From: Sminthopsis crassicaudata | Taxonomy: Eukaryota | Length of the DNA stretch: 64,000 bases | Reading direction: 5' to 3' | Assembly (NCBI RefSeq): GCF_048593235.1 | Contig: NC_133622.1 | Span: forward strand, 16,492,001-16,556,000 | Part shown: positions 20,929 to 54,941 of the stretch, one piece after another | Position numbering within the stretch: position 1 is the first letter of the stretch | Layout: every line of letters starts with the position of its first letter | Notes under the pieces: generated by a model | The model's input: only the letters and a program-made list of their open reading frames with translations | The model's database searches: none | Told to the model about the DNA's origin: nothing | Made by a program: the position numbers and the translations under genes

Positions 20929-21013
20929 ATGGCTCCTTGGCCTGAATCGGATAACTCCCACGCTGATCCTAATAAGTTTGTTCAAGAGGAAAAAGAAAAA
21001 GGAAGCTCTAGCA
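20929..21013 (+). CDS. SLC34A2: SLC34A2 exon 2 coding part (acceptor cacag|acc at 20925/20926)
   Basis: ACC ATG G Kozak context; [28 protein letters not shown]; donor A|GTAAGT. Confidence 0.95.
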
Positions 21014-24000
21014 GTAAGTACCATTCTCTCTTCTTGAAGTAGCACTTGCTGCCATCTTCCACTCTTCCCCAATGGAAATGGGCCTTATTCCTGATGGATT
21101 TTTGCTGTCTTTAGCAGATAATGCCCATTCTTCTGGAAACAAGATAGAACTTCAGCCAACTTGCTCTACTATTGCCCTGGTTGAAGAGCCAGTGGTACAG
21201 CAAGACCCATCTGACATGCCTAAAGTGAAGGATCCTGAGATCAAGTGGTCAGGTAACCTCATAGGGGAGAATATGTGATCTACTGCTGCTTCTGTGGTTT
21301 GCTTTATTTTAACTATTTNNNNNNNNNNNNNNNNNNNNNNNNNNNNNNNNNNNNNNNNNNNNNNNNNNNNNNNNNNNNNNNNNNNNNNNNNNNNNNNNNN
21401 NNNNNNNNNNNNNNNNNNNNNNNNNNNNNNNNNNNNNNNNNNNNNNNNNNGTTTCTTTTTGTGGGAAGAGGAAGCATTTTATCATTTCCAGATAATGCAA
21501 TACTTGAATTTGTAGTTTAAAAATCAGGTTTGTGTTGCTTTTGACACTTCCTAAAGGAGTGACCTTGGATTTAGAATGTTATATTTGGATTCTCTACCTC
21601 ACAAGTTTTTTGTGAAGAAAACATGGAGTTCATCTTAAAGCACTGCAGAAATGCTGGCTGGTATTATTTTTATCATTTTCTGCTGCCCCCAAGCCTGTGG
21701 TTAGAGCTGTCTTTCTGCCACATCTACAGGGGTTGAGGACTTTAAGGCCTTGTGAACATTTCTTATTATATTATATCTCTCAATGTGGATTATTGTTGGG
21801 CTGCTTGAACTCAATTTATGTCTTAGTTCAGGACTCCATTGTAATATTCTCTAATATCTCTGGCTTCCTGTTCTTGAACAATGACCAACGGGAACCATTA
21901 GATTCTCCTTACCTCCTTTATCCAAATCCCATGAATTTGGTTCCTACAGACATTAAGAGTCATACTGTTCTATAGTATACTAACGTGTGATGGGGAAGGC
22001 TTGGCGTGGTAGCAGACCTTATAAAAAAGTTAATCTTAACAGGAACCACTAGTAGGACATTTTTGTCTCATTGATTTATTTTTAAAATGGAGGTAATCTC
22101 TTTATTTTTGGTACAAATCTGATTTTCTAGCTGTAGCAAACTCAGTATAGAAATTTCTTTCCTCTGCTGATACAGATTAGCAGTTCATCTCTTAACTTAT
22201 GGTTTTAGAAAGTTGTCTGGGAGTACTGGGAGGAAAATGCTTTGTCCATAATCATTAGGAGAGCAAGATTTGAACTGAGGTCTTAGTGCCTTCAAGGGCT
22301 ACATCCCCCTGCCTCCTTATGCTGGACTGCATTCAAAGAAGGAGGGTGTTTGACTCATGGTAAGTGCTTTTATCATCAGAGCACAGTGGGATGTCCATCC
22401 TGGTGCTGCAGTGAAGCAGTTCAGGGACTTGGGTGGGATAGAAATAGATGAGAAGGCTTCTCCCAGAGGGCAGGCAGGTTGAGGGATTGCAGTAAAGGAG
22501 CTAGGAAAGCTTAGATGGAAATGAAATCTTTGGATGTATGAAGGGATGTCCTGTGGAAAAGGGGTGAATTGGTCTTGTTAGAAATTCTATGGAGGTTCCA
22601 GAAGAAAGATGATCTAATTAAATCCAAGAAATGGCCAGAAGTGGAATGTGCTCTCATTAGTGCAGATGGTACAATCAGGCTTGAATTACTGATGATGCAG
22701 AAGGGAGTCTTGGAAAGAATTGGAAGTTTCATCCTACAATTCCACTATGATGCAGGTGTATTCATCCATAGACATTATTAGACATGTTCAGGGGACAGAC
22801 TTGGGGGATATATGAAAATAGTAAATAACCTGGACCCTGCATAAGATACAGAGTTGGCTCTAGTCATTCAGTGCCCCTAATTATAATCATGACATCATCA
22901 TAACATAATGAAACACTTTGCAATATTATAAGAATTGACAAAGACACTGTACAACCACATGGTGTTGGAAAAATGCTCTGATAGATGGCTACAAAGCATA
23001 ATAGAGTGAGGTAAGCTTGTAAACAGCTTAGCTCCTCCTCTCCATGCTCACTTCAGGGTGTGCACTAGCTGGCCCATAGATAGAACAGGAGATGCTAGAT
23101 CTGATGTCCAACACCCGAGTTTGACTGGACTTAAAGCAGCACCTGCCTCAGTCTGCATTCGAGGAAGAAATGAGATGAAATAGTTTTGCCAGTTTTCAAA
23201 GCACTCTGGGCACTTTGGCTCCACCATTGAATCTCCCCTGGCTCCGGAACTGGGCTTTTGGAATGCAACTGTTACTTGTAGACAGGGAAGGAAGGTAGAA
23301 AAGTGGAAACTGGGAACAGGGATACTGGGTGAAAGGGGCCATTCAGCTTAGGGGTCAGTGAGAAATGGCATGTTCTCTGAGTATCCATGAGATGGGCCAG
23401 GCTGTGGGGAAGGTTGGGGCTGTGGGGAAGGGCTGGGGCGGGACTAAGGGCTAATCCTCCTAGGGTTGGCCAGCATTCATTAGGAAGATTTGGGGCCAAA
23501 AGAGTCTTTACAAAAACAGAACTGTCATTTTTATTGTAAAGCCCAAGACCCCAATGACCCCAAATGCCCTTCTGGAGAGCACTAAGTGCTCTGGCTGGTC
23601 ATTATCTGGGACCCCTCTACCTGGAACTGACTGGTCCTATTATCTGCTCCACTTAGCAAGCCAATGGGTCAGCCTGGTTTCCTTATGGCTCCCCCTCATC
23701 CCCTCCAGACCTCAAAGTCTTTAATGATACAAAGCTTCTCCATCAATGTGGCTTTTCAAATGTGGTGGGGGTGGGTGCCAAATTTTGGGGATCACTTCAA
23801 GGCCAGCTTCTTCAAATGCAGTTGCTCATGTATCACCCAAGCTGAAAATCCCAGCCTGCTTTCCCCTGGCTAGAAAGAGATGGGACATGATTGCACAAAA
23901 TGTCAGATTCCACCCCCCCCCCCATCTCCGGGGGTCTGTGGGTTTGTATGTCAAGCTGTACATATGCCTACATTAATAAGGCAATGTTTGTATAGCCCTT

Positions 24001-35158: not shown

Positions 35159-35424
35159 TCATCAAGAATCTTAAAAGGCTAGAATTAAATCTATCCTGTG
35201 AGATTTTTTCTTGTTCCTGGGTCTGGAAGCCTGAAATAAATCCACATATTGTAGACGGTATTTCCTGAACCATTCTTGCTGAACATTTCCAGATTAAGGA
35301 ATTAGGTCTGAAAGGTGCCATCAGGAACAGAGCCAGAAAGCATGGGGATACCATTTAATTAGTTTAATTACATTATCTATCAGATTGCACCCCCATCTTA
35401 AAATGTCACATGATGCCTAATTTT

Positions 35425-36450
35425 TTTTTCTATAAATCTTTTTATTTTTATTTTCACAACATATGCATGGATACTTTTTCAACATTGACCCTTGCATTGC
35501 CTCTTGTTTCAGATTTTCTTCCCTTAACCCCTCCCTAGATGGCAAACAATTTAATATATGTTAAGCATGTTGAAATATGTGTTAAATTCAATATGTATAA
35601 ATGTATTTATATAATTCTCTTTCTGCACAAGAGAAATCAGATTAAAAAAAAGAAAGCAAATGAATAAGAAAACAAAAAGCAAGTGAACAACAAAGAGAAT
35701 GAGAATGCTGTGTTGTGATCCATACTCAATTCCCACAGTCCTCTCTCTGGGTGTGGATGACACAAGATCATTGGAAGTGCCATCAATCATCTCACTGTTG
35801 AAAAGAGTCATGTCCAGTCTGAACTGATTGTCGTATAATATTGATGTTGCCATGTATAATGATCTGGTTCTGCTCATTCCCCTTAGCATCAGTTCCTGTA
35901 GATCTCTCCAAGCCTCTCAAATCATTCTCCTGATCATTTCTTATACAACAGTAATGTGCTATAACATTCATATACCATGTCTTATTCAGCCATTCTCCAA
36001 CTAATGGGCATCCATTCAGTTTGCAGCTTTTCACACTACACAAAGGGCTGCCACAAACATTTTTGCACATGGGGGTCCCTTTCCTTCCTTTAAGATCTCT
36101 GGGATGTAAGCCGTGTTAAGGACCATGCTTAAGTGAAGGGGAGGGTCAATTCTCAGAGAGCCTCCACAGCTGTGAATCATAACATCTGAAGGATTGCAGG
36201 GCAGCCCTTATTAGTGCAGATGTTCCCTGTAGATTGGGAATGAAATAAATTGGAAGCAAAAGGGAAGAGGAGGGAGGTCAGACAATGCAACTAACTGCCT
36301 CAGTGGAGAGGTGGGAGAATGCAACTGTCTCAGTCCTCCTTGTATCATCCTCTCACGTGAAGAGTTAGAACTCCAGCAATCACTGGCAGGTGGCTGCCCT
36401 ATCACAACAAAGCCCAATAGAAACACTGCTGGGTCAAAGGGTATGCACAA
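35425..36450 (-). mobile_element. L1 3' fragment interrupted by a solo LTR
   Basis: L1 homology stops at 36113 (gggatgtaagcc) and resumes at 36410 (aagcccaatagaaacactgctgggtcaaagggtatgcaca). Confidence 0.85.
36114..36409. mobile_element. Solo LTR (296 bp, TG...CA) with a 6-bp near-perfect TSD
   Basis: Begins TGTTAAGG and ends CAACA; flanks are AAGCCG (36108-36113) and AAGCCC (36410-36415). Confidence 0.75.
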
Positions 36451-37454
36451 TTATACAAGTTATTCTTGACAATTAATTCTTGTCAACCATTATTTACAAG
36501 TAATTGGAATTTTATTGTAATTCTATGATTTTTAGGAATTAAAAAAATTTACTTTAGTAGTGATGATTCATAAGCCAATTTGTGAATATTATGCTGAAGT
36601 TTATGTATAAACAACTTGTCAGCATAATTATAGTGGTGTTTTTAATGCAAATCTTGCAACTTAGAGCTATGATTTGGATGAGTATGTAGAATTTCTGAAC
36701 TATAATTCCATATCTTTTTGTGACCCTAGATAAATTGCTTGTTTATTTTGCATGCAGGAAAGTTTTATTTTGCATTCTTGAAAGACAGGGTGCCTTGAAA
36801 GACACACCTTTAAAACGCCAAAGGCGGGATTTTATTTCCTATCCTGAAGCACAAGTTTCTCCCATGATTCCCCATTAATTGGATGTTACAGAATTACAGG
36901 ACATGAATCTCCACTCTTTTTACATAGTCAGACCCTGCTCCCAAGTAGCTAAGAGAGGAGGGCTAAGGACAAATAATAAAAGATTCTTTTCACCTGACAC
37001 CTGACACCCCTGATTACAAAAGTCAGTCCCTGCTCACATGGAGTTTACATTCTTTTGGGGGAAGATAATTCCACCCTTGATTATTTCTTGAAGTCCATGT
37101 GGGTCATTTTTCTAATTTGTTTCAATTCTCTAGTTTAATTTTCATAACTGTGGAAACCCCAAATACCCATCCATTTCTTACAATTTTCCCCCTTTTTTCT
37201 TTTAATAATTTGGTTTCCGCATTCTTTTCAAATCGAAAAATTTGGCTAATTTTTACATCTTACTTCATAAAAATCTGTTAATCCTTTACACAGAATGAAT
37301 AGTTAATCCCTGAATTCTTTACCAATTATTCTGATGTGACTATACAAGGAGTAGATCTACTTCCAATTATAACAGAAGTCATTTAAAAAAAAAAAATTTG
37401 AAATGGACACTTTTGTACTTTGCAAGACTATAACTTGAAATAAGGAAAATTCTT

Positions 37455-39645
37455 TTTTTAAACTTTTTAAATTTTTTAAAATTATTTTTTATAATTATAA
37501 CATTTTCTTTGTTAGTACATATGCATAGGTTAATTTTTATTTTTATTATTATTATTTTTAACAACATTATCCCTTGTACTCCCTTCTGTTAAGAGTTTTT
37601 CCCCTCCTTCCCTCCACCCTCACCCCTAGATGGCAGGCATTCCCATACATATTAAACATCTTATAGTATATCCTAGGTACAATATATATGTGCAGAACCG
37701 AATTTTGTTGTTGTCGTTGTTGCAAAGGATGAATTGTATTCAGAAGGTAAAAATAATCTGGGAAGAGAAACAAAAACAAAACAAAACAAAAAAAACCAAT
37801 GCTCACAGTTTACACTCATTTCCCAGTGTTCCTTTTCTGGATGTAGCTGATTCTGTCCATCATTGATCAACTGGAATTGGATTAGCTCTTCTCTATGTTG
37901 AAGATTTCCACTTCCATCAGCATACATCCTCGTACAGTATTGTTGTTGAAGTGTACAGTGATCTTCTGGTTCTGCTCGTTTCACTCAGCATCAGTTGATG
38001 TAAGTCTCTCCAAGCCTCTCTGTATTCCTCCTGCTGGTCATTTCTTACAGAAAATAATATTCCATAACCTTCATATACCATAGTTTACCCAACCATTCTC
38101 CAATTGATGGACATCCATTCATCTTCCAGCTTCTAGCCACTATGAAAAGGCCTGCCACAAACATTTTGGCACATACAGGTCCCTTTCCGCTCTTTAGTAT
38201 TTCCTTGGGATATAAGCCCAATAGCAGCAATGCTGGATCAAAGGGTATGCACATTTTGATAAATTTTTGGACATAATTCCAGATTGCTCTCCAGAATGGC
38301 TGGATTCTTTCACAACTCCACCAACAATGCATCAGTGTCCCAGTTTTCCCACAGCCCCTCCAACATTCATCATTATTTGTTCCTGTCATCTTAGCCAATC
38401 TGACAGGTGTGTAGTGGTATCTCAGAGTTGTCTTAATTTGCATTTCTCTGATCAATAGTGATTTGGAACACTCTTTCATATGAGTGGAAATAGTTTTAAT
38501 TTCATCATCTGAAAATTGTCTGTTCATATCTTTGATCATTTATCAATTAGAGAATGACTTGATTTCTTTTAAATTAGAGTCAATTCTCTTTATATTTTGG
38601 AGATGGGCCTTTATCAGAACCTTTAACTGTAAAAATGTTTTCCCAATTTGTTACTTCCCTTCTAATCTTGTTTGCATTAGTTTTATTTGTGCAGAAACTT
38701 TTTAATTTGGTGTAATCAAAATTTTCTATTTTGTGATCAATTATGCTCTCTAGTTCTCCCTTGGACACAAACTCCTTCCTCCTCCACAAGACTGAGAGGT
38801 AAACCATCCCATGTTCCTCCAATTTATTTATGATTTCGTTCTTTATGCCTAAATCTTGGACCCATTTTGATCTAATCTTATTATGTGGCGTTAAATGTAG
38901 ATCCATGCCTAGTTTCTGCCATACTAATTTCCAGTTTTCCCAGCAGTTTTTGTCAAATAATGAATTCTTATCCCAAAAGTTGGGATCTTTGGGTTTGTCA
39001 AACACTAGATTGCTATTTTTAGTCACTATCTTGCCCTGTGAACCTAACCTATGCCACTGATCAACTAGTCTATTTCTTAGCCAATACCAAATGGTTTTGG
39101 TGACTGTTGCTTTATAATATAGCTTTAAATCAGGTACAGCTAGACCACCTTCATTTAATTTTTTTTTTTTCATTACTTCCCTTGAAATTCTCGACCTTTT
39201 GTTGTTCCATGTGAATTCTGTTGTTATTTTTTCTAGGTCATTAAAATAGTTTCTTGGGAGTCTGATTGGTATAGCACTAAATGAATAGATTAGTTTGGGG
39301 AGTATTGTCATCTTTATTATATTCGCTCGGCCTATCCAAGAGCACTGAATGTCTTTCCAATGATTTAAATCTGACTTTATTTTTGTGGCAAGTGTTTCGT
39401 AATTTTGCTCATATAATTCCTGACACTCCTTTGGTAGATATATTCCCTTTTATACTATCGACCGTTATTTTGAATGGAATTTCTCTTTGTATCTCTTGCT
39501 GTTGGATTGTGTTGATAATGTATAAAAATGCTGAGGATTTATGTGGATTTATTTTGTATCCTGCGACTTTGCTAAAATTCTGAATTATTTCTAATAGCTT
39601 TTTAGCAGAGTCTTTGGGGTTCTCTAAGTATACCATCATGTCATC
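37455..39645 (-). mobile_element. 2.2-kb 5'-truncated young L1 (ORF2 3' part plus 3' UTR) with a 12-bp TSD
   Basis: AGGAAAATTCTT at 37443-37454 and 39646-39657. ORF2 fragments at 39409-39639, 38580-39311 and 38045-38539 are in different frames. Confidence 0.95.
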
Positions 39646-39820
39646 AGGAAAATTCTTAATATGTTTTTTGTTACAGTAAATTATACCTTTTATGAAAGTC
39701 CTATATGTTTATAAAACTTGTTTCATGTTACCTTAATCTTCGTGTTATGTTGGTTTTTCACGTAAGAGAATTGTTGTCTAGTATAAAAGTTGAGTTGTAA
39801 CAATTATTTTCATATTTTAG

Positions 39821-39864
39821 TGTAGAAAATCACATGAAATTATGAAGTTCTAGAGTGATATCAG
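39821..39864 (+). pseudogene. ANAPC4: psiANAPC4 exon (EENSDEIIKLLGDVR)
   Basis: ttttag|t gta gaa aat cac at gaa att atg aag ttc TAG agt gat atc ag|ATacat: 1-nt deletion, a stop and a lost donor. Confidence 0.75.
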
Positions 39865-40253
39865 ATACATTTTCATGGAAATATTTGTGGTGATAAATAT
39901 AGGTTTCTTATTTTTAACTTAATTTGAGGAGGAAGTATTAAATGGATCGTTATGTGTTTGTACAATTTTTTTTTTCTTTTTCATTAAGCATTCTTTTAAC
40001 TTGATTTTATTCTATGGCCTTTCATTTTGTCAATTTAAAAAAATAGTTTTAATAGACTTGCATTCCTTTCCTATTTTTTTTTTTTTAAGAAAAGAAATTT
40101 TAATGGAGTAAAGTAGTTATGAATGAGATTTTATCTTTGACTCCTAGAGTTGGATGTTGTATTGCATTTAGGTCCCATCAAATATATTTATTATTAAGGT
40201 GGAGACATGGCACATAGACAAAAGAATTAGGGACATAGCGTGGACAAATTATA

Positions 40254-40708
40254 NNNNNNNNNNNNNNNNNNNNNNNNNNNNNNNNNNNNNNNNNNNNNNN
40301 NNNNNNNNNNNNNNNNNNNNNNNNNNNNNNNNNNNNNNNNNNNNNNNNNNNNNNNNNNNNNNNNNNNNNNNNNNNNNNNNNNNNNNNNNNNNNNNNNNNN
40401 NNNNNNNNNNNNNNNNNNNNNNNNNNNNNNNNNNNNNNNNNNNNNNNNNNNNNNNNNNNNNNNNNNNNNNNNNNNNNNNNNNNNNNNNNNNNNNNNNNNN
40501 NNNNNNNNNNNNNNNNNNNNNNNNNNNNNNNNNNNNNNNNNNNNNNNNNNNNNNNNNNNNNNNNNNNNNNNNNNNNNNNNNNNNNNNNNNNNNNNNNNNN
40601 NNNNNNNNNNNNNNNNNNNNNNNNNNNNNNNNNNNNNNNNNNNNNNNNNNNNNNNNNNNNNNNNNNNNNNNNNNNNNNNNNNNNNNNNNNNNNNNNNNNN
40701 NNNNNNNN
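40254..40708. other. Assembly gap (N run)
   Basis: Run of n characters. Confidence 1.
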
Positions 40709-41223
40709 GAAAATTTTCATCTTAGGTATAACTTCAGTTAGCCTTTCTAAGCTTCTGTTTCCTTATCTTTATAAACAGGGAATAATAACAGTTAAACCTT
40801 GTGGGCTTGTTGTGTGAATCCATAGCCCTAATATGTGCAGAGTGCTTTGTAAATCTTAGACTAGAAATGGCAGGTGTCATCTTAGTAGAGCTATGATGAT
40901 ACTGGTCACAGATAAGAAGCAGCACTGTATTGGTACTTTAATGATAATTTTTACTCTTATTATCTGCCAACAACCTGTTATCTTCCAGGTAGCAGGCTTT
41001 GCTCATTTGCACAGTTGAATTTTTATGCTGCTTTGGAAAAGATTAGGCATGTTTAGCTGAATTTGACCAACAAATCAGTAGACTTGTTTTGCTTTATCAA
41101 TTTCCACTGCAGGAGAACCTTAATATGTAGATTATATAGGAAAAGTCATTTAGAGCTGAGTTTTAGAACTTAATTATTTCTATTGTTGATTAGTCCTCAG
41201 CTTGTTGCCTTACTTTGAATTAG

Positions 41224-41308
41224 GCTTAATGCTCTTGTCCTTGGAGGAAACTCTGAGTTCATTGAGATCTATGCTTATGGAATGTACAAAATTGCCACTG
41301 TTACAGGG
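41224..41308 (+). pseudogene. ANAPC4: psiANAPC4 exon (RLNILVLGGSSGFIELYAYGMFKIARVTG), reading frame intact
   Basis: attag|; (R)LNALVLGGNSEFIEIYAYGMYKIATVTG; |GTGAGT. Confidence 0.93.
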
Positions 41309-42158
41309 GTGAGTTTTCCTTTTATATTTTCCCTATAATTTTTTTTAATACACCAGCTAATTCATTTGTGAGAGAAGATTCAAACACTAACTATTCTAAT
41401 TTTCAGTGATTGAAATAACTATTTCTCAAATACTGAGTGTATATTTTTTTTCTGAAAGGATTGATGAATATTTTCTTACAATCTTAGGAATTAATTAAAT
41501 TTGGAAGTTAGAGATTTCAGCTATAATTCATACAAAGTGTAAAAGTAAGAGACATAATACTCATAACAAGCAGGAGCTATTAGTTGCTAATGGAATTGAA
41601 GACAACTAACAAAAATGATTGAAATGCTTGTAGTTGCTTTATAACCTCACTTCTTGTTTATTATCTTTTTGCCGGCCTGTGGAGAATAAAAGCTAGAATT
41701 GGTGGCTAAAATACAGCTAAGCTAAATTAGTCACAGCTAGTTTTCTTTCTCTCCCCCGCACCAGAGCTAAATGCTTAGTGCTGAACTTGTTCCCTCCTCA
41801 ATTCTGCCTTCCCTCTCAGAGGGAGAAGAATTTCTGCTGCTGAACTCTTTAGTTGTGGAAACTGACTTTGTTGGGTAACCCAAGGGAAGAAGGGAGAAAA
41901 GAAACAGTGAGATCACTTCCCTGAATGAAGGCCCTAACTGTACAAGTTAGTTTGACACTTCAGTGCCCGTGGCAGAAGGCAGGCAATATCCTGATCCATG
42001 GAGATTTCTGTTGCATGAGCTGTCAGGTTTTCTAGGTTTTACATAGGTTTTTGCCTCATATATTATACACAACGGCAAAGTTGTGCATTAATATTAAAAA
42101 TGTTATTTGAGTGAAATGAACAAATAAAATTTATGACTGGAATCTTTTACCTTCTCAG

Positions 42159-42269
42159 GTTTCTGGTTCGTGTCTCGGCTTATGCTTATCAAGTGACTTG
42201 AAATCATTATCAGTTATTACAGAGACAGGAGATTCTACCAGTGTTATGTCAGAAATTTCATATTTTCAG
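42159..42269 (+). pseudogene. ANAPC4: psiANAPC4 exon (IAGTCLALCLSSDLKSLSVVTE...SEVSYFQ), reading frame intact
   Basis: ctcag|VSGSCLGLCLSSDLKSLSVITETGDSTSVMSEISYFQ|GTGAGT; 111 nt. Confidence 0.95.
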
Positions 42270-42829
42270 GTGAGTAAAACTGAGCTTCAGAGCAATGTGA
42301 AATACAGTCTATTTCTTGTAGACATGCTTTTCTTATCTAGTGAGTTCAGTGGCTGAGAACCATTTTGATGATGTATTGCTTAATAATATTAAAGACTGAG
42401 AGTTAGAGAGCTCTATAAGACCTGCAAAGATCTTCACATATATTCCCATTTCTGAGCTTTACATGACTGAGATAAGTACCAATGGTATTATTATCTCCAT
42501 TGAGATAGCTTGAGTCTCAGAGAGAAATGACTTGCCCATAGTCACATAGTAAATAGAATTCTATTCTGTAGAATATGTTCATACATATTCTGTCTGAAAC
42601 AGAATCAGAATCCAGAACTTCTTCCTTGACAATAAAACTCACCCATATCCAACATCCCATAAATACATAATATGGCCTTTATAACTCCAGCATCTTTTTT
42701 AGAGAAAATAGCTTTATGGGCATTGTGATTTCAGCAGAGAAAGCATTCATCAGAATTGGTTCTGTGTAGTAGTGGACGGCCTGTAGAAGCAGTAACATGG
42801 TTGGTCTGGTTATGGTGAATTCCACGTAA

Positions 42830-44860
42830 AGCAAACCTTAAAATTGTACAAAACTTATCAGTAACTACAATAAAAGACTGCAGGTCCTGGAAGTGTATCT
42901 ACTGACAATCAAAAAAAGTAGGTCTGGGCCAAAAATATCACAACCAGCAAAATTATTATTATTATTTTTAATAGTTTTTATTTACCAGATATATGCACGG
43001 GTAATTTTACAACATTGACAATTGCCAAACATTTTGTTCTAATTTTTCCCCTCCTTCTCCCCCCCACCCCGCCAGCCAGATAGCAGGTTGACCAATACAT
43101 GTTAAATAGTTAAGAATATAAATTAAATATAATATATATACATGACCAAACAGTTGTTTTGCTGTACAAAAAGAATCAGACTTTGAAATAGTGGACAATT
43201 AGCCTGTGAAGGAAATCCAAAATTCAGGTGGACAAAATGAGAGGGATTGGGAATTCTATGTAGTGGTTCATAGTCATCTCCCAGAGTTCTTTCACTGGGT
43301 GTAGCTGGTTCAGTTCATTACTGCTCTATTGGATCTGATTTGGTTCATCTCATTGTTGAAGACGGCCTTGTCCATCAGAATTGATCATCACATAGTATTG
43401 TTGTTGAAGTGTATAGTGATCTCCTGGTCCTGCTCATCTCACTCAGCATCAGTTCCTGTCAGTTTCTCCAGGCCTTTCTGAAATCATCCTGTTTGTCGTT
43501 TCTTACAGAACAATAATATTCCATAATATTCATATACCACATTTTATTCAGCCATTCTCCAATGGATGGGCATCCACTCAGTTTCCAGTTTCTGGCCACT
43601 ACAAAGAGGGCTGCCACAAACATTCTTGCCCTTTCCCTTCTTTAAGATCTCTTTGGGATACAAACCCAGTAGTAACACAGCTGGATCGAAGTGTATGCAC
43701 AGTTTAATAACTTTTTGAGCATAGTTCCAAATTGCTCTCCAGAATGGCTAGATGTATTATTCACAATTCTACCAACAGTATCCCAGTTTTCCCACATCCC
43801 CTCCAACATTGCACATTATCTTTCCCTGTCATTCTAGCCAATATGACAGGTGTGTAGTGGTATTTCAGAGTCAGCAAAATTATTTGTAATAATGAACAAG
43901 AGAAAATGGACATTCAGTGAACTTACAGATTTTCAAGACTTTCTATCAACCCAACCCAAAGTTAATAGAAAATTTAACATATAAGAATCCATATTAAAGA
44001 TCAGTTTTAAAGAACTCAACTCATGGACAAATTGTTTAAACATTCTTTTTTTTTTTTTTTAATATGGATAATGTATATGCTTAAGATTCACATTAGCAAT
44101 AATGTAGCTCAAAAGAATGGCAGTGTTAATGTAAAATAGTAATTATGTTATATAAATGAGGTTTAGAGAAAGAATAGACACAGAGGCATTAGAGGGGGAG
44201 GAGGACTTGCAATTCTGAAAACCTACTCATATCTGGAATGGGTTTAATAGGCAACACTACATATATAACATGAAGGCGGTATAGCACCCTCTAAAATCTG
44301 TAAAGAAATAAGAGAGGAGGGATGGGGCAGATGGGGAAGCAGAGGATGAAGGAAGAGACAAGGAAGGGATCCTTGGGTGGGGGGAGGTTAAGTAATAGCA
44401 AGTCAAGTTAGGAACAGAATTAAAGCAAAGAATCAGTAGGGATATGTGGTAGGGGATATATGTATGTATGTATGTACATATTTATACATAAATTAACTAT
44501 AACTTTCTTGAAGGGGATGATGGGGCATTTAAGAGGAGAAAAGAATAAATGAATGAGATGCTTAGTAGAGAACCAAAAAACAATTTACAAGAAGTAAAGA
44601 AAAATGGACATTCATGAATATAATTTCTTCTACTAATACACACCCACACACACCCACACACACAAACAGACACACATACACTTTTTTGATATGGTAATTT
44701 GTAATATATTTTGAATCCTCTATGATGTTCTATGATGTGCTGTGCTCGATAATGTTCTCTTTTGTTTTGCTTTATTTTGTTTTGTATTCCTTTTCTGTTT
44801 TTTTCTCATTCTGTTTTTTCAAATAAACAGAAAATAAGCAGAAAAAGCCAAAAGAAAATA
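42830..44860 (+). mobile_element. HAL1-like element (L1 ORF1 C-terminus plus long 3' UTR, no ORF2), interrupted by a later L1
   Basis: IVQNLSVTTIKDCRSW...KVGLGPKISQPAKL (42840-42957) continues after the insertion as FVIMNKRKWTFSELTDFQDFLSTQPKVNRKFNI* (to 43984). About 840 nt of non-coding sequence then leads to AATAAA (44822-44827) and an A-rich tail. Confidence 0.7.
42958..43871 (-). mobile_element. 5'-truncated L1 with a 13-bp TSD, nested in the HAL1-like ORF1
   Basis: CAGCAAAATTATT at 42945-42957 and 43872-43884. Confidence 0.95.
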
Positions 44861-45314
44861 ATTTTTAGAGTTTAATTTGGAAAATATTTCAAAAGGTATT
44901 ATAAATTATATAGCTTTTAAATGACAGTGCATTTTTAGAGGTCAGTGTTTAATTAAAAGTTCTGTTCTAAAACTGAGGATTTATATCAACCTCCATGATT
45001 TGACCAAACACTCATTTTGGCAATTAGTATAATCTGAAATATGCTTGTGGAAAATTTTAAATAGGTTATTTCAGTAGGAGGTTTGTTCAAATCATCTTTA
45101 GAATAGTCTTTGAAATTTATCTTGATGCTGGCTACTATTATTTATGTTTTTATCTTTTTCCTGTGAGGCTCAAAGCTAAATTCATTAAGGTCAGCACTTT
45201 ATCCATTATACTGTGTTCCCTCTTCTGAATTTAACAAGCTCATCTAATTGCTTCCTTTAAATTGGCATATTGTCCCTTCGGTGAATGCTAAATTATTTCT
45301 TTTTTTTAAATTAG

Positions 45315-45392
45315 GACTTGGAAAAAGCTTGGCCAGTCAATAGAGTCTTCATACTCCAATATACAGAAATTGGTCAAAAGTCACTTACAAAG
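45315..45392 (+). pseudogene. ANAPC4: psiANAPC4 exon (GLKKLGQSIESSYSSIQKLVISHLQ)
   Basis: ttag|...KKLGQSIESSYSNIQKLVKSHLQ..|GTATGA; 78 nt against 77 expected, i.e. a +1 frameshift at the 5' end. Confidence 0.93.
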
Positions 45393-45537
45393 GTATGATT
45401 ATTTGGAATACTTTAGCAAATGTAGCTGTTGAAATTAATTTAACTAAAATTTTGTAGTGATTCTAGTTATGGTTCTAACTGTGGTTCTTGAGCTTGTTAT
45501 TTTGGTTTATCAATCATTGAATTGGATATAGGAGGAG

Positions 45538-45936
45538 AATTTAAAAAGCAAATGTCCAAATCCATCTATCCCTTACCTCCATATTATTTTCTCTACTGCA
45601 TATACATTGACCCTTTTTCCTAGTTTAATAAAAGCATGTATCAAAATAAACAAATAAAAATAAAAGCCTGTGTCAATTTAAAAATAACTGAAAATTGACG
45701 TCATCAAAGATCCATTTATTACTGAGCAAAATCAGTTAATTTAAAAAGCGAATGTCTGAGTCCATCTGTCATCACCTCCATATTATTTTCTCTACTGCAT
45801 ATACATTGACCGTTTTTCCTAGTTTAATAAAAGCATATATCAAAATAAACAAATAAAAATAAAAGTCTATATCAATTTTAAAATAACTGAAAATTGACAT
45901 CATCACAGATCCATTTTACTATTGAGCAAAATCAGT
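45538..45936 (+). repeat. Tandem duplication, 200-bp unit x2
   Basis: ttaaaaagc at 45541 and 45741; both copies continue acctccatattattttctctactgcatatacattgacc...gagcaaaatcagt. Confidence 0.95.
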
Positions 45937-46114
45937 GAACAATAATGCTTCCTTATCACACAACTGACCTTTAAATGAGCAGATGTGAGCTGTATTTGGA
46001 CTTTGCTCTAGAATGGAAAATATGCATGCTTTATTATAAAACTATGTCTGATAATTTATTTTTAAGTAAATGTGATTGATGTTGTGTTGTCATGTAATAT
46101 GTTTGTTTCTCTAG

Positions 46115-46170
46115 CATCCAGAAACAATTTTTGAAAAGGAAAGTATTTCAATGCAGAAAGAATTGGTCAG
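46115..46170 (+). pseudogene. ANAPC4: psiANAPC4 exon (APDLYNRKGKYFNVERVGQ)
   Basis: ctag|...GKYFNAERIGQ|ATaaaa; 56 nt against 57 expected; donor GT>AT. Confidence 0.85.
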
Positions 46171-46434
46171 ATAAAACATTTTTATTGACTTTGGTTATCA
46201 TGCTAATTCTCTAACAATCTGTAAAAATTTATGGTACTATTAATCTGAATGCTTAATAATTGGTATGGTTTGATCATTTGATTTTGTATGGTTAATGCTA
46301 ATAAATCACTTCTAGGAGATCTAAAATTGAGATGAATGATTCTGCATACATAATACCATAAAATAGAAGCACTCCCTGTTCTTTGGCACAATTTCTTGTT
46401 TTCTTGAGTTTAGTTCTAAATAATTTGTTTCCAG

Positions 46435-46476
46435 TATTTGAAAGATGAAGATGATGATCATGTGTCACCACAAGGA
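46435..46476 (+). pseudogene. ANAPC4: psiANAPC4 truncated exon (YLKDEDDDLVSP)
   Basis: ttccag|YLKDEDDDHVSPQ; homology then ends abruptly and L2-like sequence follows. Confidence 0.85.
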
Positions 46477-46519
46477 GAAAAGATAATGAGTTCTCTTTTT
46501 GGTTGAATTTTAAAAGTCT

Positions 46520-47060
46520 ATGGCACATCCAGTTTGAGATGTTTGAAAGAAAATGAGAGAGGCAAGATTAGAGGTTAGCAGAGGGATGGGACACGTAGAC
46601 TGGGAAATCAGCAACATAGAGGTGGTCATAAAATCCATGGGCTTTCACCAAGTAGTATAGAGGGAGAAGAGAAAGAGACCCACCATGGAAGCCTGAGACT
46701 TACCTGCCTGGACAGGGCATAGTATGAATGGGGATGCAGCAAAGGATATTGAGATGCATGGTGAGCTATTGGATAGGAGAATCCTCCAGAGCAGCAGCAT
46801 GAAAGCAAAGAGAAGGGAAAGATTTTTGTGGGGGGAAAAGGGAACGGTATGAAGTGTAACACTGAGAAAAGGCCATCAGAACTCCTCGGCACCTTTGGAC
46901 AGAGTGGCTGCAGTGAGTGATGAGGTCAGAGGCCAGATGGCAAAGGGTTGAGGTGTAAGTGAGAGCAAAGGACGTGGAGGCAGGAAGAAGCTGCAGCTTT
47001 TTCTCTGAGTTTAACTAAGCATGAGCGGGGAGGACCAGGGTAAGGAGATGCTGTGAGCTA
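46520..47060 (-). mobile_element. L2 remnant
   Basis: gtagactgggaaatcagcaacatagagg...agggagaagagaaagaga...ggccatcaga...gaggtcagaggccagatggcaaaggg. Confidence 0.55.
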
Positions 47061-47785
47061 AGGAAGCTCTATTTTCCGGACAGATCTGATTGTTTATTCC
47101 TAGTTCCTGGTGTTACACTAGAAGAACGTTGCTTGACTTTTTTTTATTTATCCTCCACGCAAACTGGCATTCCTGGGAGTAAATCTAGAATTCTTTCCCA
47201 TTCAATAAACATTCAAGATACCACTAGAAATATTAAAAAAAAAAAAAAAAGAATTAGTGATAAAATCCCTGCTCTCAATAGTCTAGTGGGTTGGGAGAAA
47301 TAGCAGGATGTATCCAGATATGTAACTTTTTAAACTACAAGATTGTCACAATTTTTTTTTTTTTTTTGAGGACAGTGATTCACTATGCGTGTTGTGAGAG
47401 GTAGTATGACATATTAGATAGAGTGCTCCTCTGACAAAACTAGCTGAGTGGCTGGAAAATGACTTCACTTCTCAATGTTTTGGGGAATTCTCTAGTCAAA
47501 GTGCAGAGAAGGTGCCAGCCTACTTTGGAGCAGGTTCTCTGATCATGAACAAATTTGTTTCTGTATTCTTGGTTTCATGAATGTGTAATCAAAAATCTCG
47601 TTTGATCTATCTGTCATCAATAATAGAACAGCAGGACAGGGGGAATTTAGAAGAAAATAGAATGCATCCAAATATAATGACTCTTGATCTTTTTCTTTTT
47701 CCCCTCCCTCTGCCAGTTTAATGTCTGTGCTTTAGTGATCCTTCAGTTAAAGGAGGATCTCTCAATATAATACATTTTCCTCTAG

Positions 47786-47925
47786 CTCCTACGACTGTGT
47801 TAATGCACATCTTTATGATGATGAAATGATAACAGTCACTCTTAAGGTCTTAGTTCAGTTACCATTATCTTTGGTATACACTAAGGAAGACACTCTCGAG
47901 GAGTTCAGCAGGACAGCTATTAAAG
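47786..47925 (+). pseudogene. ANAPC4: psiANAPC4 exon (YSCLDAQFYDDETVTVVLK...LLVQLPLSLVY)
   Basis: ctag|SYDCVNAHLYDDEMITVTLKVLVQLPLSLVYTKED...|GTACAA; ~10-codon internal deletion (DTVGREGRDR) and a phase shift at the 3' end. Confidence 0.9.
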
Positions 47926-48558
47926 GTACAATGATATGGATAATTACTTCTCTCAGCTAGTAGTTAAATTAAATGTATTTTTAAAAATACATTTAGTTAT
48001 TTAGGGTATAATTGGTAAGAGTAATATATTGGGTAACTGAAAAGCAGGGAATTCCCCTCTGTAATTGTACCTTCTGTTGTTAGAACAAGGTGAGGTATAC
48101 TTGGGTGGGATGAAATGATCTCCTCAAATCCATATCCCAAAAAAGCCCTAGAATAGCATTAATAGAGATTTGTTGGAAATAGAGAATAGTGGAACAAAGA
48201 GAAAATATTTAGCAAGATTATGAAGATCTTGGTGATTTTTTAATCAAAGATGATTTCCCAGACTAGCTTTTGCTTAGGCAGGCCAGAGACCCAAAATTGA
48301 ATCTTATCTTTGATCTCACTAGTTGTGGGATCTTGGGCAAGACCTTAGCCTCTTTGGCTTCAGTAAAATCTGTAAAATCAGAGGATTAGGCTAGCTGAAT
48401 TTTGAAATCTTTTCCATCTCTAAATCTATGAGCTTGTGATCCTAAAACTATAGGCTTTTTTTCTTTTTCAAGAGAAGCATGCTAAATGAACTTGGATAGA
48501 AGTTGAAGGCACAAAAAATGAAGGGAAATTCTACTCATTATGGTTTAACTCTGGGTAG

Positions 48559-48678
48559 GCTTGATGAACAGAGTGATCTTATACCTACATTGTCTTCCTG
48601 GAGAGTCAGTGGAGAATACTGAAGAATATGAAAGTGCAGTATGTTGCTGTGAATGGTTTTCAGAAAGTTTCTTGTGTA
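48559..48678 (+). pseudogene. ANAPC4: psiANAPC4 penultimate exon (RLDEQ...WRLLESMKAQYVAGNGFRKVSCV)
   Basis: gtag|LDEQSDLIPT..(frameshift)..ESQWRILKNMKVQYVAVNGFQKVSCV|GTATTT; 120 nt against 124 expected. Confidence 0.92.
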
Positions 48679-48860
48679 GTATTTATATTTGAATAGGGCT
48701 TTTAAAATTTGTTATGGCATATCACTTGGATACTTTGGATCCTTAGCTGTTCAGTTTTGTGTTCAATTGTTCAGTTTTGTGTTCAGAGAGTATTAAGTTA
48801 AAACCAAACACTCTATATTTTTATAATCCACATATTCCTTTAATATATCAGAAGTCTAAA

Positions 48861-49380
48861 GATTTCAGAAAGGCCTGGAAAGACTTACATGAACTGATGC
48901 TGAGTGAAATGAGCAGGATCAGGAGATCATTATACATGGCAACAACAATACTGTATGAGGATCAATTCTGATGGAGGTGACTCTCTTCAACAATGAAATG
49001 AATCAAATCAGGTCCATTTGTAGAACCAGCTACACCCAGTGAAAGAATTCTGGGAAATGAGTGTGAACCACAACATAGCATTTCCAATCCCTCTGTTTTT
49101 GTCCGCTTGCATTTTTGGTTTCCTTCTCAGGTTAATTTTACATTATTTCCAAGTCCAATTCTTCTTGTGCAGCAAAATAACTGTATAAATATGTATACAT
49201 ATATTGTATTTAACATATACTTTAACATATTTAACATGTATTGGTCTACCTGCCATCTTGGGGAGAGAGTCAGGGGAAGGAGGGGAAAAGTTGGAACAGA
49301 AAGTTTTGCAAGGGTCAATGCTGAAAAATTACCCATGCATATATCTTGTAAATAAAAAGCTATAATAAAAATATATATAC
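48861..49380 (+). mobile_element. 5'-truncated L1 with a 12-bp TSD (1 mismatch) in the last psiANAPC4 intron
   Basis: CAGAAGTCTAAA (48849-48860) and CAGAAGCCTAAA (49381-49392); REAWKDLHELMLSEM-type sequence; AATAAA and an A-rich tail. Confidence 0.9.
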
Positions 49381-49585
49381 CAGAAGCCTAAATCTAGTAA
49401 TTTTAGAATAAATTGAGATAAATGAGTTATTTCCCTTTAAAAAATCTTTTTCCAAGAAAATTTCAGTTTGTGCTTCTATTTTACAATTGCTGAAAAATAT
49501 ATTTATTGGGTTGCTCAAAGGTATTGATTTTTAAAAATTAATATCTTAAATATATTTAAAACTAAGTCTACTTATATTTCTTTAG

Positions 49586-49802
49586 TTACACCCAAATCTC
49601 TATTAGAGTATGTGAAATGGATGTAAACGATGGGGAAGTTGAAGAATAAGATGAGGATGAGGAAGAGGAATTTTCATCCCATCATGTGCTTGGTGAGCAG
49701 GAAGAAGTAATTCAATCTGCAGATAACTAAGAAAATGTTGCCAATGAATCTGCCGATCTGGTGGATGCAGTGGAAGATCAGGAATCTAACTTAGATTCAT
49801 AA
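49586..49802 (+). pseudogene. ANAPC4: psiANAPC4 terminal exon (LSSNLRHVRVFEMD...acidic tail...LDS*)
   Basis: tttag|LHPNL..RVCEMDVNDGEVEE*DEDEEE...N*ENV...ESNLDS TAA; a frameshift and two internal stops. Confidence 0.9.
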
Positions 49803-50184
49803 TCTGAGCTGCAATTATTTTGTATGTTTTCATTATGTTTGTTAATAAGTAGGTGTGGACTAAGATTATTTTCTTTTAAACACCTTAATTCTTTCTTTGT
49901 TCCAAAGAAAGAAATAATTAATTATCTTGTGAACAAGGCATATTTTCTTTAAATCTGCTTCATCTTCCAGAAATGTAACCATTGGAAGGACATTTCCTTT
50001 TGCTGATGTTTCTTTATAAAACTGCCTGAAGAACTGTAGTTTTTAAAGCAAACATTAATTGAATGTGAGGAAGGTAATTCAGTGTTTTCTGCTTCTCAAA
50101 AAGTATCAGGACTTATTCCTCTTAGCACAATGAGTTTACATGAAAGCAGTTGTCATTTATTACTGAAGGAGGCTATTCAGCTTT

Positions 50185-50357
50185 CCTTTTTTTTTTTTTT
50201 TTTTATTTATTTTTTAGCTAAGGCAATTGGGGTTAAGTGACTTGCCCATGGTCACACAGCTGGGACATGTAGTATTAAGTGTCTGAGATCAAATTTGAAC
50301 TCAGGTCCCCCTGACTTCAGGGCTGGTGCTCTATCCACTGCACCACCTAGCTGCCCC
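50185..50357 (-). mobile_element. Full-length CORE-SINE (WSINE1-like) with a 12-bp TSD
   Basis: CTATTCAGCTTT at 50173-50184 and 50358-50369. Confidence 0.95.
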
Positions 50358-51296
50358 CTATTCAGCTTTTTTAGCATTAAAATTTTTTTAATCAACGAGA
50401 TGTATTATTTTTATAGCATTTCTTCTTTGTAAAATCCCTGAATGCTTTGTATTTGTTACTTGTATATTTCCTTTATCAGTTAAAAATGTGAATGCCTGCA
50501 GTGCTAAGTTTTTAAAATGTTAAAAGATTGATGTCCTTATCAATTAAATATCCCTAATACTTTTTGTCCCTAAGTGGATAACTTTCCACATTCTGTTATT
50601 GTACTTGATTGAGTTTTTGATTCTTTGAATCAACAATATTCACAGATACAACTACTGGATATTAAGGACATATAGGGGACATCTGCCCAATTTTACTTCT
50701 TGGGAACATTAGGAGTAATAGATTCAAGTAAATATAATTTAATATTAGCGTTAATGAACTCCTATGCACTGTTAATTTTTTAATATCTCTCCCAAATTAA
50801 TGGGTATTGTTTCTGTGCAACTGTCAATATTCCCACCTCTTACCTCAGTCCTTGTTGCAGTGTTTAGATCCATCCATAAATCAATTTATAAAGGCTCAGG
50901 ATTTCTTTAGACTGGAAAGTGCAATCGAATGAATAGTTATGTGTAAGACTATTCTGTGCTTTGGCTGCTGTTTCATATATTGTTTCTTTCCTTACACACT
51001 GCTAATAGATTGGTCAGAATGCATCTGTTGGTTTGTCCTTTAGAAGAGTGAGTGAAACTGAAGAGAATTCGTTGTTTTAGTCGTGCTCAGGAAACTGTAG
51101 AATTGCCTTCTTTTGTACTGTGACAGATTCTGTAGCATAACATAGCATCCTTCCCCCAAAAAGTATTCACATATGTATTGATTAATTCTTAATTAATGAG
51201 TATTTAGGTCGTGGTGCAACACTTAGTTAGTTAAGAGAGAGGATAAGATGTTTGGAAGAAGTGTGGGTTACATACAAGAAGCCATAGAGCTAGCTC

Positions 51297-51515
51297 AGTC
51301 TAGTTTGTGAGAGCCAATTGTTCTGATTTCAGTGGGAGCATTTACACACTGGAAATCAGACAATACTGCAATCAGGGATTGGTCTATTGTTCTGTCATAA
51401 TCTAGATTTAAGAAAATAACGAAGAAAATGTTAATAGGGAAGATTGAACACAAGTTGATTTGGATACATGTTTTACTTGTTTTTGGAGAGCAGATTATTA
51501 AACATGCGCCTGAGC
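51297..51515. mobile_element. Probable non-autonomous hAT-type DNA transposon remnant
   Basis: gagagccaattgtt...gagcatttacac...aatcaggg...gagagcagattattaaacat resembles a common marsupial MITE, recalled from memory. Confidence 0.4.
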
Positions 51516-51924
51516 ATCCCTGGTTTTATATGTAGAATATTTCTTGATGGTCAAGCTAGATCGGGGCACAAAGTTAGAAAAAAAGTGACATATCCAATTT
51601 TGGGGGCAAATTATTGATGCTTATCCTTACAATGAATTTTGATATCTCAAGGAATTATTGAATTCTAAAATATCTCTTCTCATTTAATAACTGCACTACT
51701 GGGTACAGTAGTGTTTTGATTCATTTGGAAATGTTCTGAGCTGGGGAAAAGTTGAAATGAAGACATCTAAATTCCTTGCCTTAAAGTGAACCTATAAACA
51801 GAATGAAATAAGGTGACTGTAATTACTTAAATATTGAAGATGGGACAAATGAATGGGGTTAAAATATGGCTGTGATCATTTTGAAATTGGAGATTTGTTC
51901 TTTCCCCTTAATTTCTTATATTCC

Positions 51925-52080
51925 CAAACTCCAACTGCTAGGCATCCACTCAGTTTCCAGTTCCTTGCCAGTATAAAAAGGGCAGCCACAAACATTTTTG
52001 AACAAATGGGTCGTTTCCCTTCTTTTGCTATCTCTTTGGATCTAGTCAAGACACTGCTGGATCAAAGGGCATATGCAGGG
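51925..52080 (-). mobile_element. Short L1 fragment
   Basis: ggcatccactcagtttccagttcc...agggcagccacaaacattttt...ctgctggatcaaaggg. Confidence 0.75.
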
Positions 52081-52553
52081 TGACAAAGCACTTTGTGAAT
52101 TTTAGGATTAGTGTCAGGGTTTTTTGTACCTTACTATACCATTCAATAGTCACTGTGGCCACATTTATGCAGTCTGTTATCTGATGACTGACCTTTTGGG
52201 ATAGAAATCTGATTTTAGCTAGATAGGCAATCTGGCACCACTTATTAATGCCACATTTACATTTATAAGGAAGGTAGGAGCTTTGGCTCCACTGGCATAA
52301 TCTTTGGATACTCTATGTCTTAAAGGAAAACAGAGTTTAAAATTGTAGAGGTGGATATTTTGTTTTCTTTAAAAGTGCTTCTTTTATAGTCTCCAAAAAA
52401 CCTTAGTCTCTTTCTTCAGAACATTTAGCATTTACAATGGTGAAGAAAATTACTGATTGAAAAAAGAGTTACAAAAGAACACTGAGTACATGAGGCTATA
52501 AAATAGGAAAGTTTATATACCTGTATCTCCTACTTAGGGATTATTTCACATTT

Positions 52554-53086
52554 TTAAAAATAGCTTTTTATTTTTCAAAATGCATGCATAGATGCTTTTC
52601 AACATTCATCCTTGCAAAACTTTATGTTCTACATTTTTCTCCCTCCTTTTCCCCCCTCCCTCCTCCCCTGGACAGCAAGTAATCCAACATAGATTAAACA
52701 TGTACAATTCTCCTAAACACATTTCCACACTGATCATGCTGCACAAGAAAAATCAGATCAAAAAAGGGAAAGAATGAGAGAGAGAAAACAACAGGCAAAC
52801 AAACAATAGCAACAAAAACAAGGGTAAAAATTTAATGTTGTGAGCCATACTCAGTGCCCATAATCCCCATGGCTGCAGATGACTGTCCATCACAAGTCTC
52901 TTGGATCCTGCCTGAATCATCTCATTGTTGAAAGGAACCATGTCTATCAGAGCTGATCATCACACACTCTTGTTACTGTGTACAATGGTCTCTTGGTTCT
53001 GCTCTGTTCACTCAACATCAGTTCATGTAAATTTCTCCAGGCCTTTCTGAAATCATCCTGCTGATCGTTTCTTATAGAACAATAAG
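52554..53086 (-). mobile_element. 5'-truncated L1 3' end with an approximate TSD
   Basis: tattt(t)cacatt near 52542 and 53087; L1 3' UTR motifs in between. Confidence 0.85.
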
Positions 53087-54925: not shown

Positions 54926-54941
54926 AGAAATAGATTTTCTT

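Follow-up and report, generated by a model that had tools for sequence, protein, structure and literature searches.

Why should an intact phosphate transporter gene be followed, on the same strand, by the remains of ANAPC4? In human, ANAPC4 adjoins ZCCHC4 and is separated by about 200 kb from SLC34A2, which has the same orientation. The question is raised by a stretch of 64,000 nucleotides from the dunnart Sminthopsis crassicaudata (CM109186.1, 16,492,001-16,556,000, assembly GCA_048593235.1), here called the window, which contains a copy of SLC34A2 (A2) and behind it an ANAPC4 relic; the canonical SLC34A2 copy (A1) is located downstream. The window was compared with further dunnart loci (L001, L003 and L004) and with loci containing Antechinus ANAPC4 (L005), Antechinus A1 (L006), Antechinus A2 (L007) and Sarcophilus A2 (L008). 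The comparison makes it very probable that a block of about 200 kb carrying ANAPC4 and SLC34A2 was duplicated head-to-tail in a dasyurid ancestor, and that this event explains the window.

The transporter gene and its surroundings comprise the following features.

12000-16000, + strand: CpG island (GC content 0.51-0.59, 41-99 CpG per 2 kb), 5-9 kb upstream of the A2 ATG
20929-32709, + strand: SLC34A2 paralogue A2 (NaPi-IIb-like), 12 coding exons, intact
20929-21013, 21118-21252, 24067-24195, 25456-25599, 26081-26192 and 27820-28015, + strand: A2 coding exons 1-6
21319-21450: assembly gap in A2 intron 2, no exon affected
28727-28822, 29307-29427, 29989-30156, 30735-30851, 30959-31083 and 32134-32709, + strand: A2 coding exons 7-12
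32710-35370, + strand: A2 3' untranslated region (UTR) and downstream flank, common to other copies

The A2 frame runs from the ATG at 20929 to a stop codon at 32707-32709 and was shown to be open over 667 amino acids (aa) without internal stop, all 11 introns being of the GT-AG type. Its translation showed 100% identity to residues 13-679 of P0173, the S. crassicaudata NaPi-2B-like isoform X2, and was likewise fully matched by the NCBI isoform P0269. Isoforms of 667, 668, 679 and 680 aa are present in the NCBI record, and the intact 668-aa gene claimed in a preliminary description of this DNA corresponds to isoform X3. Na_Pi_cotrans (PF02690) was found in two stretches of P0269 (Pfam, E 3.6e-32), and the closest solved structure to A2 was Slc34a2a (PDB 9z60_A, E 1.5e-251). 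Each A2 repeat contains a QSSS motif (VQSSSTSTS and VQSSSVFTS), the motif pair that defines the SLC34 family. The C-terminal TAL is kept and the Cys-rich tail is shortened. The flanks of the gap in intron 2 are colinear with L007 8848-10398 and 10472-14135, about 73 bp lying between the matched ends, and the exons on its two sides join in frame. The 3' flank at 32710-35370 aligns to those of Antechinus A1 (L006), Antechinus A2 (L007), Sarcophilus A2 (L008) and a further dunnart copy, copy C (L004). Upstream of the gene, positions 10612-14884 align with the upstream flank of Antechinus A2 at a Kimura two-parameter distance (K2P) of 0.135, which shows that the CpG island is conserved; it probably contains the A2 promoter and a 5' UTR exon. 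A tblastn search with six family members gave no other SLC34A2-like exons at 1-20.8 kb or 33-64 kb.

The ANAPC4 stretch at 39.8-49.8 kb is on the + strand, as is A2, and colinear with APC4 residues 150-802. It was identified by a match to residues 200-242 of human APC4 (PDB 4ui9_I, E 5.8e-9), by two matches to Pfam PF23405 (E 2.8e-6 and 2.2e-12, both over the cutoff), by one to PF12896 slightly under the cutoff (E 1.8e-4, 21.5 bits against 23.1 bits), and by colinear tblastn matches of Antechinus APC4 (P0301) along the relic. This marsupial reference was reached through P0288, a protein in the 90% cluster of Antechinus P0162; two relic exons encode residues 1-46 of P0288, and these residues as sole query led to marsupial APC4, the best among the matches listed being P0301 (98% identity). 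P0301 and its gene in L005, with 28 coding exons, served as reference for the exon map, and identities are given against the Antechinus exons.

35371-36409: site of the lost junction and of relic exon 3 in the dunnart, occupied by an interspersed repeat
36410-37459, + strand: remains of ANAPC4 intron 3, with orthologues in the relics of Antechinus and Sarcophilus
37460-39642, - strand: insertion like a long interspersed nuclear element (LINE), with remnants of open reading frames (ORFs) at 38045-38539 (164 aa) and 38580-39311 (243 aa)
39819-39865, + strand: exon 6 (aa 150-165), 40/48 identity, 1-bp deletion, donor GT changed to AT
40254-40708: assembly gap in relic intron 6
41224-41308, + strand: exon 7 (aa 166-195), 89/90 identity, splice sites intact (AG, GTGAGT)
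42159-42269, + strand: exon 8 (aa 194-230), 103/105 identity, splice sites intact, site of the 4ui9_I match
42956-43871: interspersed-repeat insertion matching many places in the window and loci
45315-45392, + strand: exon 13 (aa 324-348), 68/75 identity, 1-bp insertion, PF12896, AG and GTATGA present
46115-46170, + strand: exon 19 (aa 454-472), 44/57 identity, 1-bp deletion, donor GT changed to AT, tblastn match to aa 461-472
46435-46471, + strand: exon 20, first 37 nt only, 36/37 identity, followed by a jump from L005 34297 to 35838
47784-47926, + strand: exon 26 (aa 629-687), 118/177 identity, deletions of 30, 3 and 1 bp, PF23405
48560-48678, + strand: exon 27 (aa 688-728), 113/123 identity, 4-bp deletion (frameshift), PF23405 (the E 2.2e-12 match)
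49586-49802, + strand: exon 28, the last (aa 729-802), 193/225 identity, deletions of 5 and 3 bp
49803-64000, + strand: duplicated 3' UTR of ANAPC4 with the intergenic DNA behind it, where the ~200-kb spacer before the canonical SLC34A2 begins
Exons 1-2: absent, never in the duplicated copy
Exons 3-5: absent, deleted in the dunnart
Exons 9-12, 14-18 and 21-25: absent, deleted

Only nine of the 28 coding exons (6, 7, 8, 13, 19, 20, 26, 27 and 28) are retained, about 37% of the coding length. Six of them are frameshifted, two donor sites are lost, and two premature in-frame TAA stops (49647-49649 and 49728-49730) precede the original TAA stop of exon 28 at 49800-49802. A complete ANAPC4 reading frame of about 800 aa is thus lacking, and the stretch is a relic and not a gene. 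Introns are retained, positions 36.4-51.5 kb being colinear with L005 17.4-44.9 kb, and colinearity extends past the relic (49413-51537 and 63659-63993 with L005 43170-46004). The first retained exon starts 7.1 kb past the A2 stop codon, which agrees with the intron-containing relic described earlier about 7 kb behind A2 on the same strand. The intron 3 remnant at 36410-37459 showed a K2P of 0.107 to the Antechinus relic and of about 0.20 to the real Antechinus gene (129 alignable sites). The flanks of the gap in intron 6 align to L005 18851-19245 and 19356-21275, about 110 bp apart and with no ANAPC4 exon between them.

What joined the two genes in this order is visible in the sister genera. 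In Antechinus flavipes, ZCCHC4 is followed by an intact ANAPC4 (15,710,006-15,743,739), A2 (15,820,592-15,833,974) and A1 (16,036,393-16,054,819); ANAPC4, A2, the relic and A1 are all on the + strand and form an A-B-A'-B' order, of which the dunnart shows A2, relic and A1. The Sarcophilus order is ZCCHC4, ANAPC4 (15,305,971-15,341,630) and A2 (15,397,841-15,408,926). In both genera the relic is found 4-5 kb behind A2, in Antechinus with an exon 3 carrying a stop and a frameshift, in Sarcophilus with exon 3, traces of exon 4 and an exon 6 with two stops. The homology of the A2 3' flank to the A1 3' flank ends at L006 34,873-34,884, 6.45 kb past the stop codon, and within about 10 bp of that end homology to ANAPC4 intron 2 starts (L005 15,832-15,842). 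In Antechinus, L007 26485-26656 corresponds to the A1 3' flank (L006 34699-34873) and L007 26663-26750 to ANAPC4 intron 2 (L005 15832-15918), and the Sarcophilus junction (L008 25702 and 25708) was found at equal breakpoints. This junction is the joint of a head-to-tail tandem duplication, with its left breakpoint in ANAPC4 intron 2 and its right breakpoint downstream of SLC34A2, and it gives base-level form to the head-to-tail duplication that had been inferred from gene order. Since SLC34A2 flank directly abuts ANAPC4 intron 2, promoter and exons 1-2 were missing from the ANAPC4 copy from the outset; it is dead, as had been stated, but it was truncated at birth rather than dying later.

An intact parent ANAPC4 is thus found alongside the relic in Antechinus and Sarcophilus, and in the dunnart its orthologous downstream flank. 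L001 1-1860, which starts at 16,451,519, has its Antechinus orthologue 3.7-5.6 kb beyond the stop codon of ANAPC4 (K2P 0.096), and this places the expected end of the dunnart gene near 16.448 Mb. Judged from this flank, an intact dunnart ANAPC4 probably lies just upstream of the stretch read. The functional ANAPC4 that had been expected elsewhere is therefore present, intact and next to ZCCHC4, in Antechinus and Sarcophilus, while that of the dunnart is placed by flank orthology.

The second SLC34A2 that the preliminary description had predicted downstream was found as the conservative canonical copy, A1, with a 694-aa isoform (P0289). It is on the same strand and about 200 kb away, so its position was correctly foreseen as to direction and not as to closeness. 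All members of the dunnart array are on the + strand, with the A2 stop at 16,524,709, the relic at 16.532-16.542 Mb and the end of the A1 reading frame at 16,746,881; this frame starts at window position 41282 and extends over 213.6 kb. Four further copies follow A1, and the possibility of a single SLC34A2 in the genome does not hold.

16.767 Mb, + strand: P0203 (566 aa, truncated)
17.015 Mb, + strand: P0297
17.083 Mb, + strand: P0213
17.118 Mb, + strand: P0155 (589 aa, truncated)

These four copies are older paralogues, and no ANAPC4 remnants were found in the 10-kb flanks of any of them or of Antechinus A1. The reading frame of A1 reaches back into the window by way of NCBI isoform X1 (P0288, 767 aa, Na_Pi_cotrans), whose ATG at 41282 is in relic exon 7. 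Residues 1-9 of this isoform come from relic exon 7, residues 10-46 from exon 8 and residues 47-72 from exon 13, the last read in a shifted frame before the transporter ATG exon is joined, so that 73 residues are added. The chimera of relic exons with the downstream SLC34A2 is a predicted gene model, and the splice sites it would use are intact.

In the maximum likelihood (ML) tree, the three A2 proteins formed one clade (support 100/100) and the three A1 proteins another (99/97). The two clades were sisters (100/99), nested within marsupial SLC34A2, which supplies the gene tree proposed earlier as a check, and each repeated the species order dunnart, (Antechinus, Sarcophilus). Clades B and C, which follow A1 in the array and are marsupial-wide, are older; both include diprotodontians, and clade C also Dromiciops. 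Orthologous dunnart-Antechinus DNA showed a K2P of 0.10-0.14, and the Antechinus relic and the real Antechinus ANAPC4 one of 0.17-0.21. Synonymous divergence (dS) was 0.181 between A2 orthologues and 0.215 between Antechinus A1 and A2. The relic and real ANAPC4 pair and the A1/A2 pair both predate the dunnart-Antechinus split, their age being about 1.2-1.9 times that of the split, and these values show that both pairs arose shortly before the dasyurid crown radiation. On the sequences compared, the A1/A2 split falls in the dasyurid stem and is neither dunnart-specific nor pan-marsupial.

The two transporter copies have evolved at very different rates. Compared with five non-dasyurid marsupial proteins, dunnart A2 carried 72 private changes and A1 13 (chi-square 41), and the corresponding Antechinus numbers were 83 and 18. 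Among the 263 columns that were at least 97% invariant in 104 non-marsupial SLC34A2 proteins, 14 were changed in A2 and three in A1. The ratio of nonsynonymous to synonymous divergence (dN/dS) between dunnart and Antechinus A2 was 0.59. The window copy is therefore a diverged paralogue, as had been proposed. Among the near-invariant positions changed in A2, L94I, V141I and I373M occur in every A2 protein, and none of these proteins keeps W542, the substitute differing between them; A207G is common to dunnart and Antechinus A2, and D196N to dunnart and Sarcophilus A2. We take position 196 to be the proposed Na1-site Asp and position 207 to be an electrogenicity position. Since A1 and A2 differ at these residues, they are a natural pair for asking which residues set Na+ coupling in SLC34. 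The A2 frame is open and its splice sites are canonical in dunnart, Antechinus and Sarcophilus, which argues for function under relaxed or shifted constraint, and A2 is most likely a working transporter under relaxed or altered constraint.

The course of events that best fits these observations would be as follows. A block of about 200 kb, with one end in ANAPC4 intron 2 and the other about 6.45 kb beyond the SLC34A2 stop, would have been duplicated head-to-tail. Copy 1 would have consisted of a complete ANAPC4, complete because the block started only just past its promoter and exons 1-2, and of one SLC34A2, now A2. Copy 2 would have begun with a promoter-less ANAPC4 without exons 1-2, followed by the spacer and a second SLC34A2, now A1. 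The window would then be the middle of the structure, with A2 of copy 1, the former junction site and the ANAPC4 fragment of copy 2. That fragment would have been dead on arrival, and exon deletions, transposon insertions, frameshifts and stops would have come later. A1 would have stayed conservative, and A2 would have kept an open, spliced frame while evolving about five times faster.

Several observations weigh against this account, and they bear on the rival explanations too. The junction is deleted in the dunnart window and visible in the sister genera only: the segments that contain junction and exon 3 in Sarcophilus (L008 24561-28534) and Antechinus (L007 24766-29108) have no counterpart in the window, where 35421-36112 matches multi-copy repeats. 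The intact ANAPC4 of the dunnart itself is placed by its flank only, and no dunnart APC4 was found among the matches listed in the APC4 search, in which marsupial APC4 proteins merge in 90% clusters; a dunnart protein may belong to the 19-member cluster of P0305. The duplicate copies are now unequal in Antechinus (about 121 kb against about 224 kb), which requires later deletions or insertions. Finally, the relic is a patchwork of higher and lower divergence (K2P 0.06-0.24), unexpected from a single undisturbed duplication. HSP-based (high-scoring segment pair) K2P was used for short, indel-rich blocks, for which three-species distances by global MAFFT alignment are inflated. To the real Antechinus gene, the relic showed a K2P of 0.06-0.09 across 40.7-42.7 kb, introns included, 0.16-0.19 at 44.9-46.2 kb, 0.18 at 47.6-48.2 kb, and 0.09-0.12 at 46.3-47.5 and 48.2-50.2 kb (chi-square for heterogeneity 53). 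The patch at 40732-42676 is 6-9% diverged, with 192 of the 195 bases of exons 7-8 identical, and its neighbouring blocks 16-24%; three differences in 195 exonic bases have a P of about 2e-6 even at an expected divergence of 10%. The shift in divergence coincides with the assembly gap at 40254-40708. The simplest reading of the patch is gene conversion from the real ANAPC4, which its sequence suggests. An assembly artefact, such as a false duplication, a haplotig or a mis-join at gaps, might be suspected from this coincidence (K2P about 0.15 before the gap and 0.06 after it) and from two gaps of estimated length. It is nevertheless very improbable, since equal order and relic are present in independent assemblies of three genera, two Sarcophilus assemblies show no base difference over 31 kb, divergence between the copies is 15-20%, much higher than that between haplotypes, and both sides of each gap are colinear with one Antechinus sequence. 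The relic might instead be the ancestral ANAPC4 decayed in place as a unitary pseudogene, its function having moved elsewhere and A2 having been inserted upstream. Such a history would agree with the missing dunnart APC4 match, with the same-strand position of the relic some 200 kb before the canonical SLC34A2, as ANAPC4 has it in human, and with several relic blocks being no further from the real Antechinus gene than orthologous DNA. It is contradicted by Antechinus and Sarcophilus, which carry both an intact ANAPC4 by ZCCHC4 and the relic behind A2; in both genera, moreover, the relic starts exactly at the SLC34A2 3' flank junction without exons 1-2, and what precedes A2 in the dunnart is orthologous to DNA flanking the real ANAPC4. 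We regard it as highly unlikely. An unrelated dispersed duplication or an ANAPC4 retrocopy that landed behind SLC34A2, for which only the general frequency of such events would speak, is the least credible history. ANAPC4 introns and downstream intergenic DNA are kept in order, which excludes a retrocopy, the junction ties the relic directly to SLC34A2 flank, the DNA past the relic is colinear with that downstream of the real ANAPC4 with the canonical SLC34A2 about 200 kb on, and the age of the relic agrees with that of the A1/A2 split.

Other doubts accept the duplication and concern what became of its products. A2 could be a decaying transporter, a pseudogene in the making, and not a working paralogue with a specialised role, and its dN/dS, the 14 changed near-invariant positions, including the proposed Na1-site Asp and one electrogenicity position, the shortened Cys-rich tail and the truncation of the array members P0203 and P0155 would fit such a decay. 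However, the frame and 11 canonical intron pairs have stayed intact in dunnart, Antechinus and Sarcophilus since before their split, dN/dS is well under 1, neither QSSS motif nor the C-terminal TAL has been lost, and four NCBI isoform models exist, so that decay, while conceivable, is unlikely. A pair of linked readings goes in the other direction and is somewhat more doubtful still: A2 would be neofunctionalised, with altered Na+ coupling or electrogenicity through Asp196Asn and Ala207Gly, in the service of a dasyurid-specific need such as uterine, yolk-sac or milk phosphate supply, and the relic would be partly alive, its exons 7, 8 and 13 serving as alternative 5' exons of the canonical SLC34A2. 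Were the relic partly alive, the preservation of exons 7-8 may reflect recurrent gene conversion from the real ANAPC4 or selection on their use as 5' exons.

Some further features were observed at the locus. The window contains three runs of N, at 6995-7136 and at the two gaps already given, and its self-comparison showed interspersed repeats only and no large internal duplication. Repeat insertions within the relic are located at 37.5-39.6, 42.96-43.87 and 48.86-49.37 kb. The first of them, the LINE-like element, is multi-copy in the window and loci, and a 93.5% identical copy at L003 24049-26101, beside another SLC34A2 copy, shows that its family was active fairly recently. Its ORFs gave no Pfam match; the element is presumably a LINE-1, to judge by what we take to be the Cys-rich tail of ORF2. 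Inside the relic, a unit of about 200 bp is present as a tandem duplicate with 90% identity (45538-45939), and the Antechinus relic contains a separate 2.4-kb tandem duplication (L007 28.4-30.3 and 30.8-32.6 kb). In consecutive A2 introns, 25070-25365 and 26482-26782 are 87% identical repeat copies, probably short interspersed nuclear elements. The 12-13 additional N-terminal residues of A2 isoforms X1 and X2 come from an exon at L001 10001, 51 kb upstream of the ATG exon in the window and about 14 kb downstream of the expected end of the real ANAPC4. The ~200-kb spacer contains a predicted gene for a 430-aa protein on the - strand, about 106.5-108.6 kb downstream of position 41282, with a coding range of 2.1 kb and no Pfam match in its record. 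In Antechinus, four nearly identical A2-type proteins were found (P0175, P0290, P0291 and P0292), two on the chromosome of the array and two on another contig of chromosome size (636,717,922 bp), suggesting a further recent duplication or transposition of A2.

The duplication block, its junction and the relic were not found described in full-text literature searches. A CAFE analysis counts an SLC34A2 orthogroup among those with significant expansion in the ancestor of dasyurids (PMC12866920, Mol Biol Evol 2026); that paper gives orthogroup copy counts only, states that this orthogroup was not investigated further, and does not mention ANAPC4 in its text. In the uterus of the pregnant opossum, an SLC34A2-like gene is listed within the top 100 transcripts by abundance (PMC5012577). 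In our tree this opossum paralogue is the product of a separate didelphid duplication, and a speculative milk or uterine role of A2 would draw its only support from this one transcript. The duplication explains the gene-count signal of PMC12866920. The comparison gives a base-level account of how an extra phosphate transporter of the intestinal and lung type was gained, with the block, both breakpoints, the timing and the diverged copy, and the dead ANAPC4 fragment is a breakpoint fossil that dates and orients the duplication. As an evolutionary mechanism it is clear and well resolved, an ordinary segmental duplication.

The event shares gene family and lineage with the expansion detected by CAFE (PMC12866920), in which junction, gene order and rates are not given. 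Compared to ANAPC4 itself (human 4ui9 chain I and Antechinus P0301), the relic is alike in its colinear exons, introns and 3' flank, but in the window it is without a promoter and exons 1-5, and 19 of the 28 coding exons are gone. It resembles the truncated unprocessed pseudogenes found at segmental-duplication breakpoints in being a partial copy that starts at the junction, with introns kept, in the orientation of its parent and under neutral decay, and differs from them in that the annotation assigns three of its exons to the following gene as 5' coding exons and in the 2-kb patch around exons 7-8 that is far less diverged. A2 is similar to SLC34A2/NaPi-IIb (Slc34a2a structures 9z60-9z66) in its two Na_Pi_cotrans repeats, both QSSS motifs, the layout of 12 coding exons, the C-terminal Cys cluster and the TAL tail, with 64% identity to human NaPi-IIb and 83% to the dunnart canonical copy, whereas it differs from this type in being an extra copy confined to dasyurids, in evolving about five times faster, and in its much shorter Cys-rich stretch.

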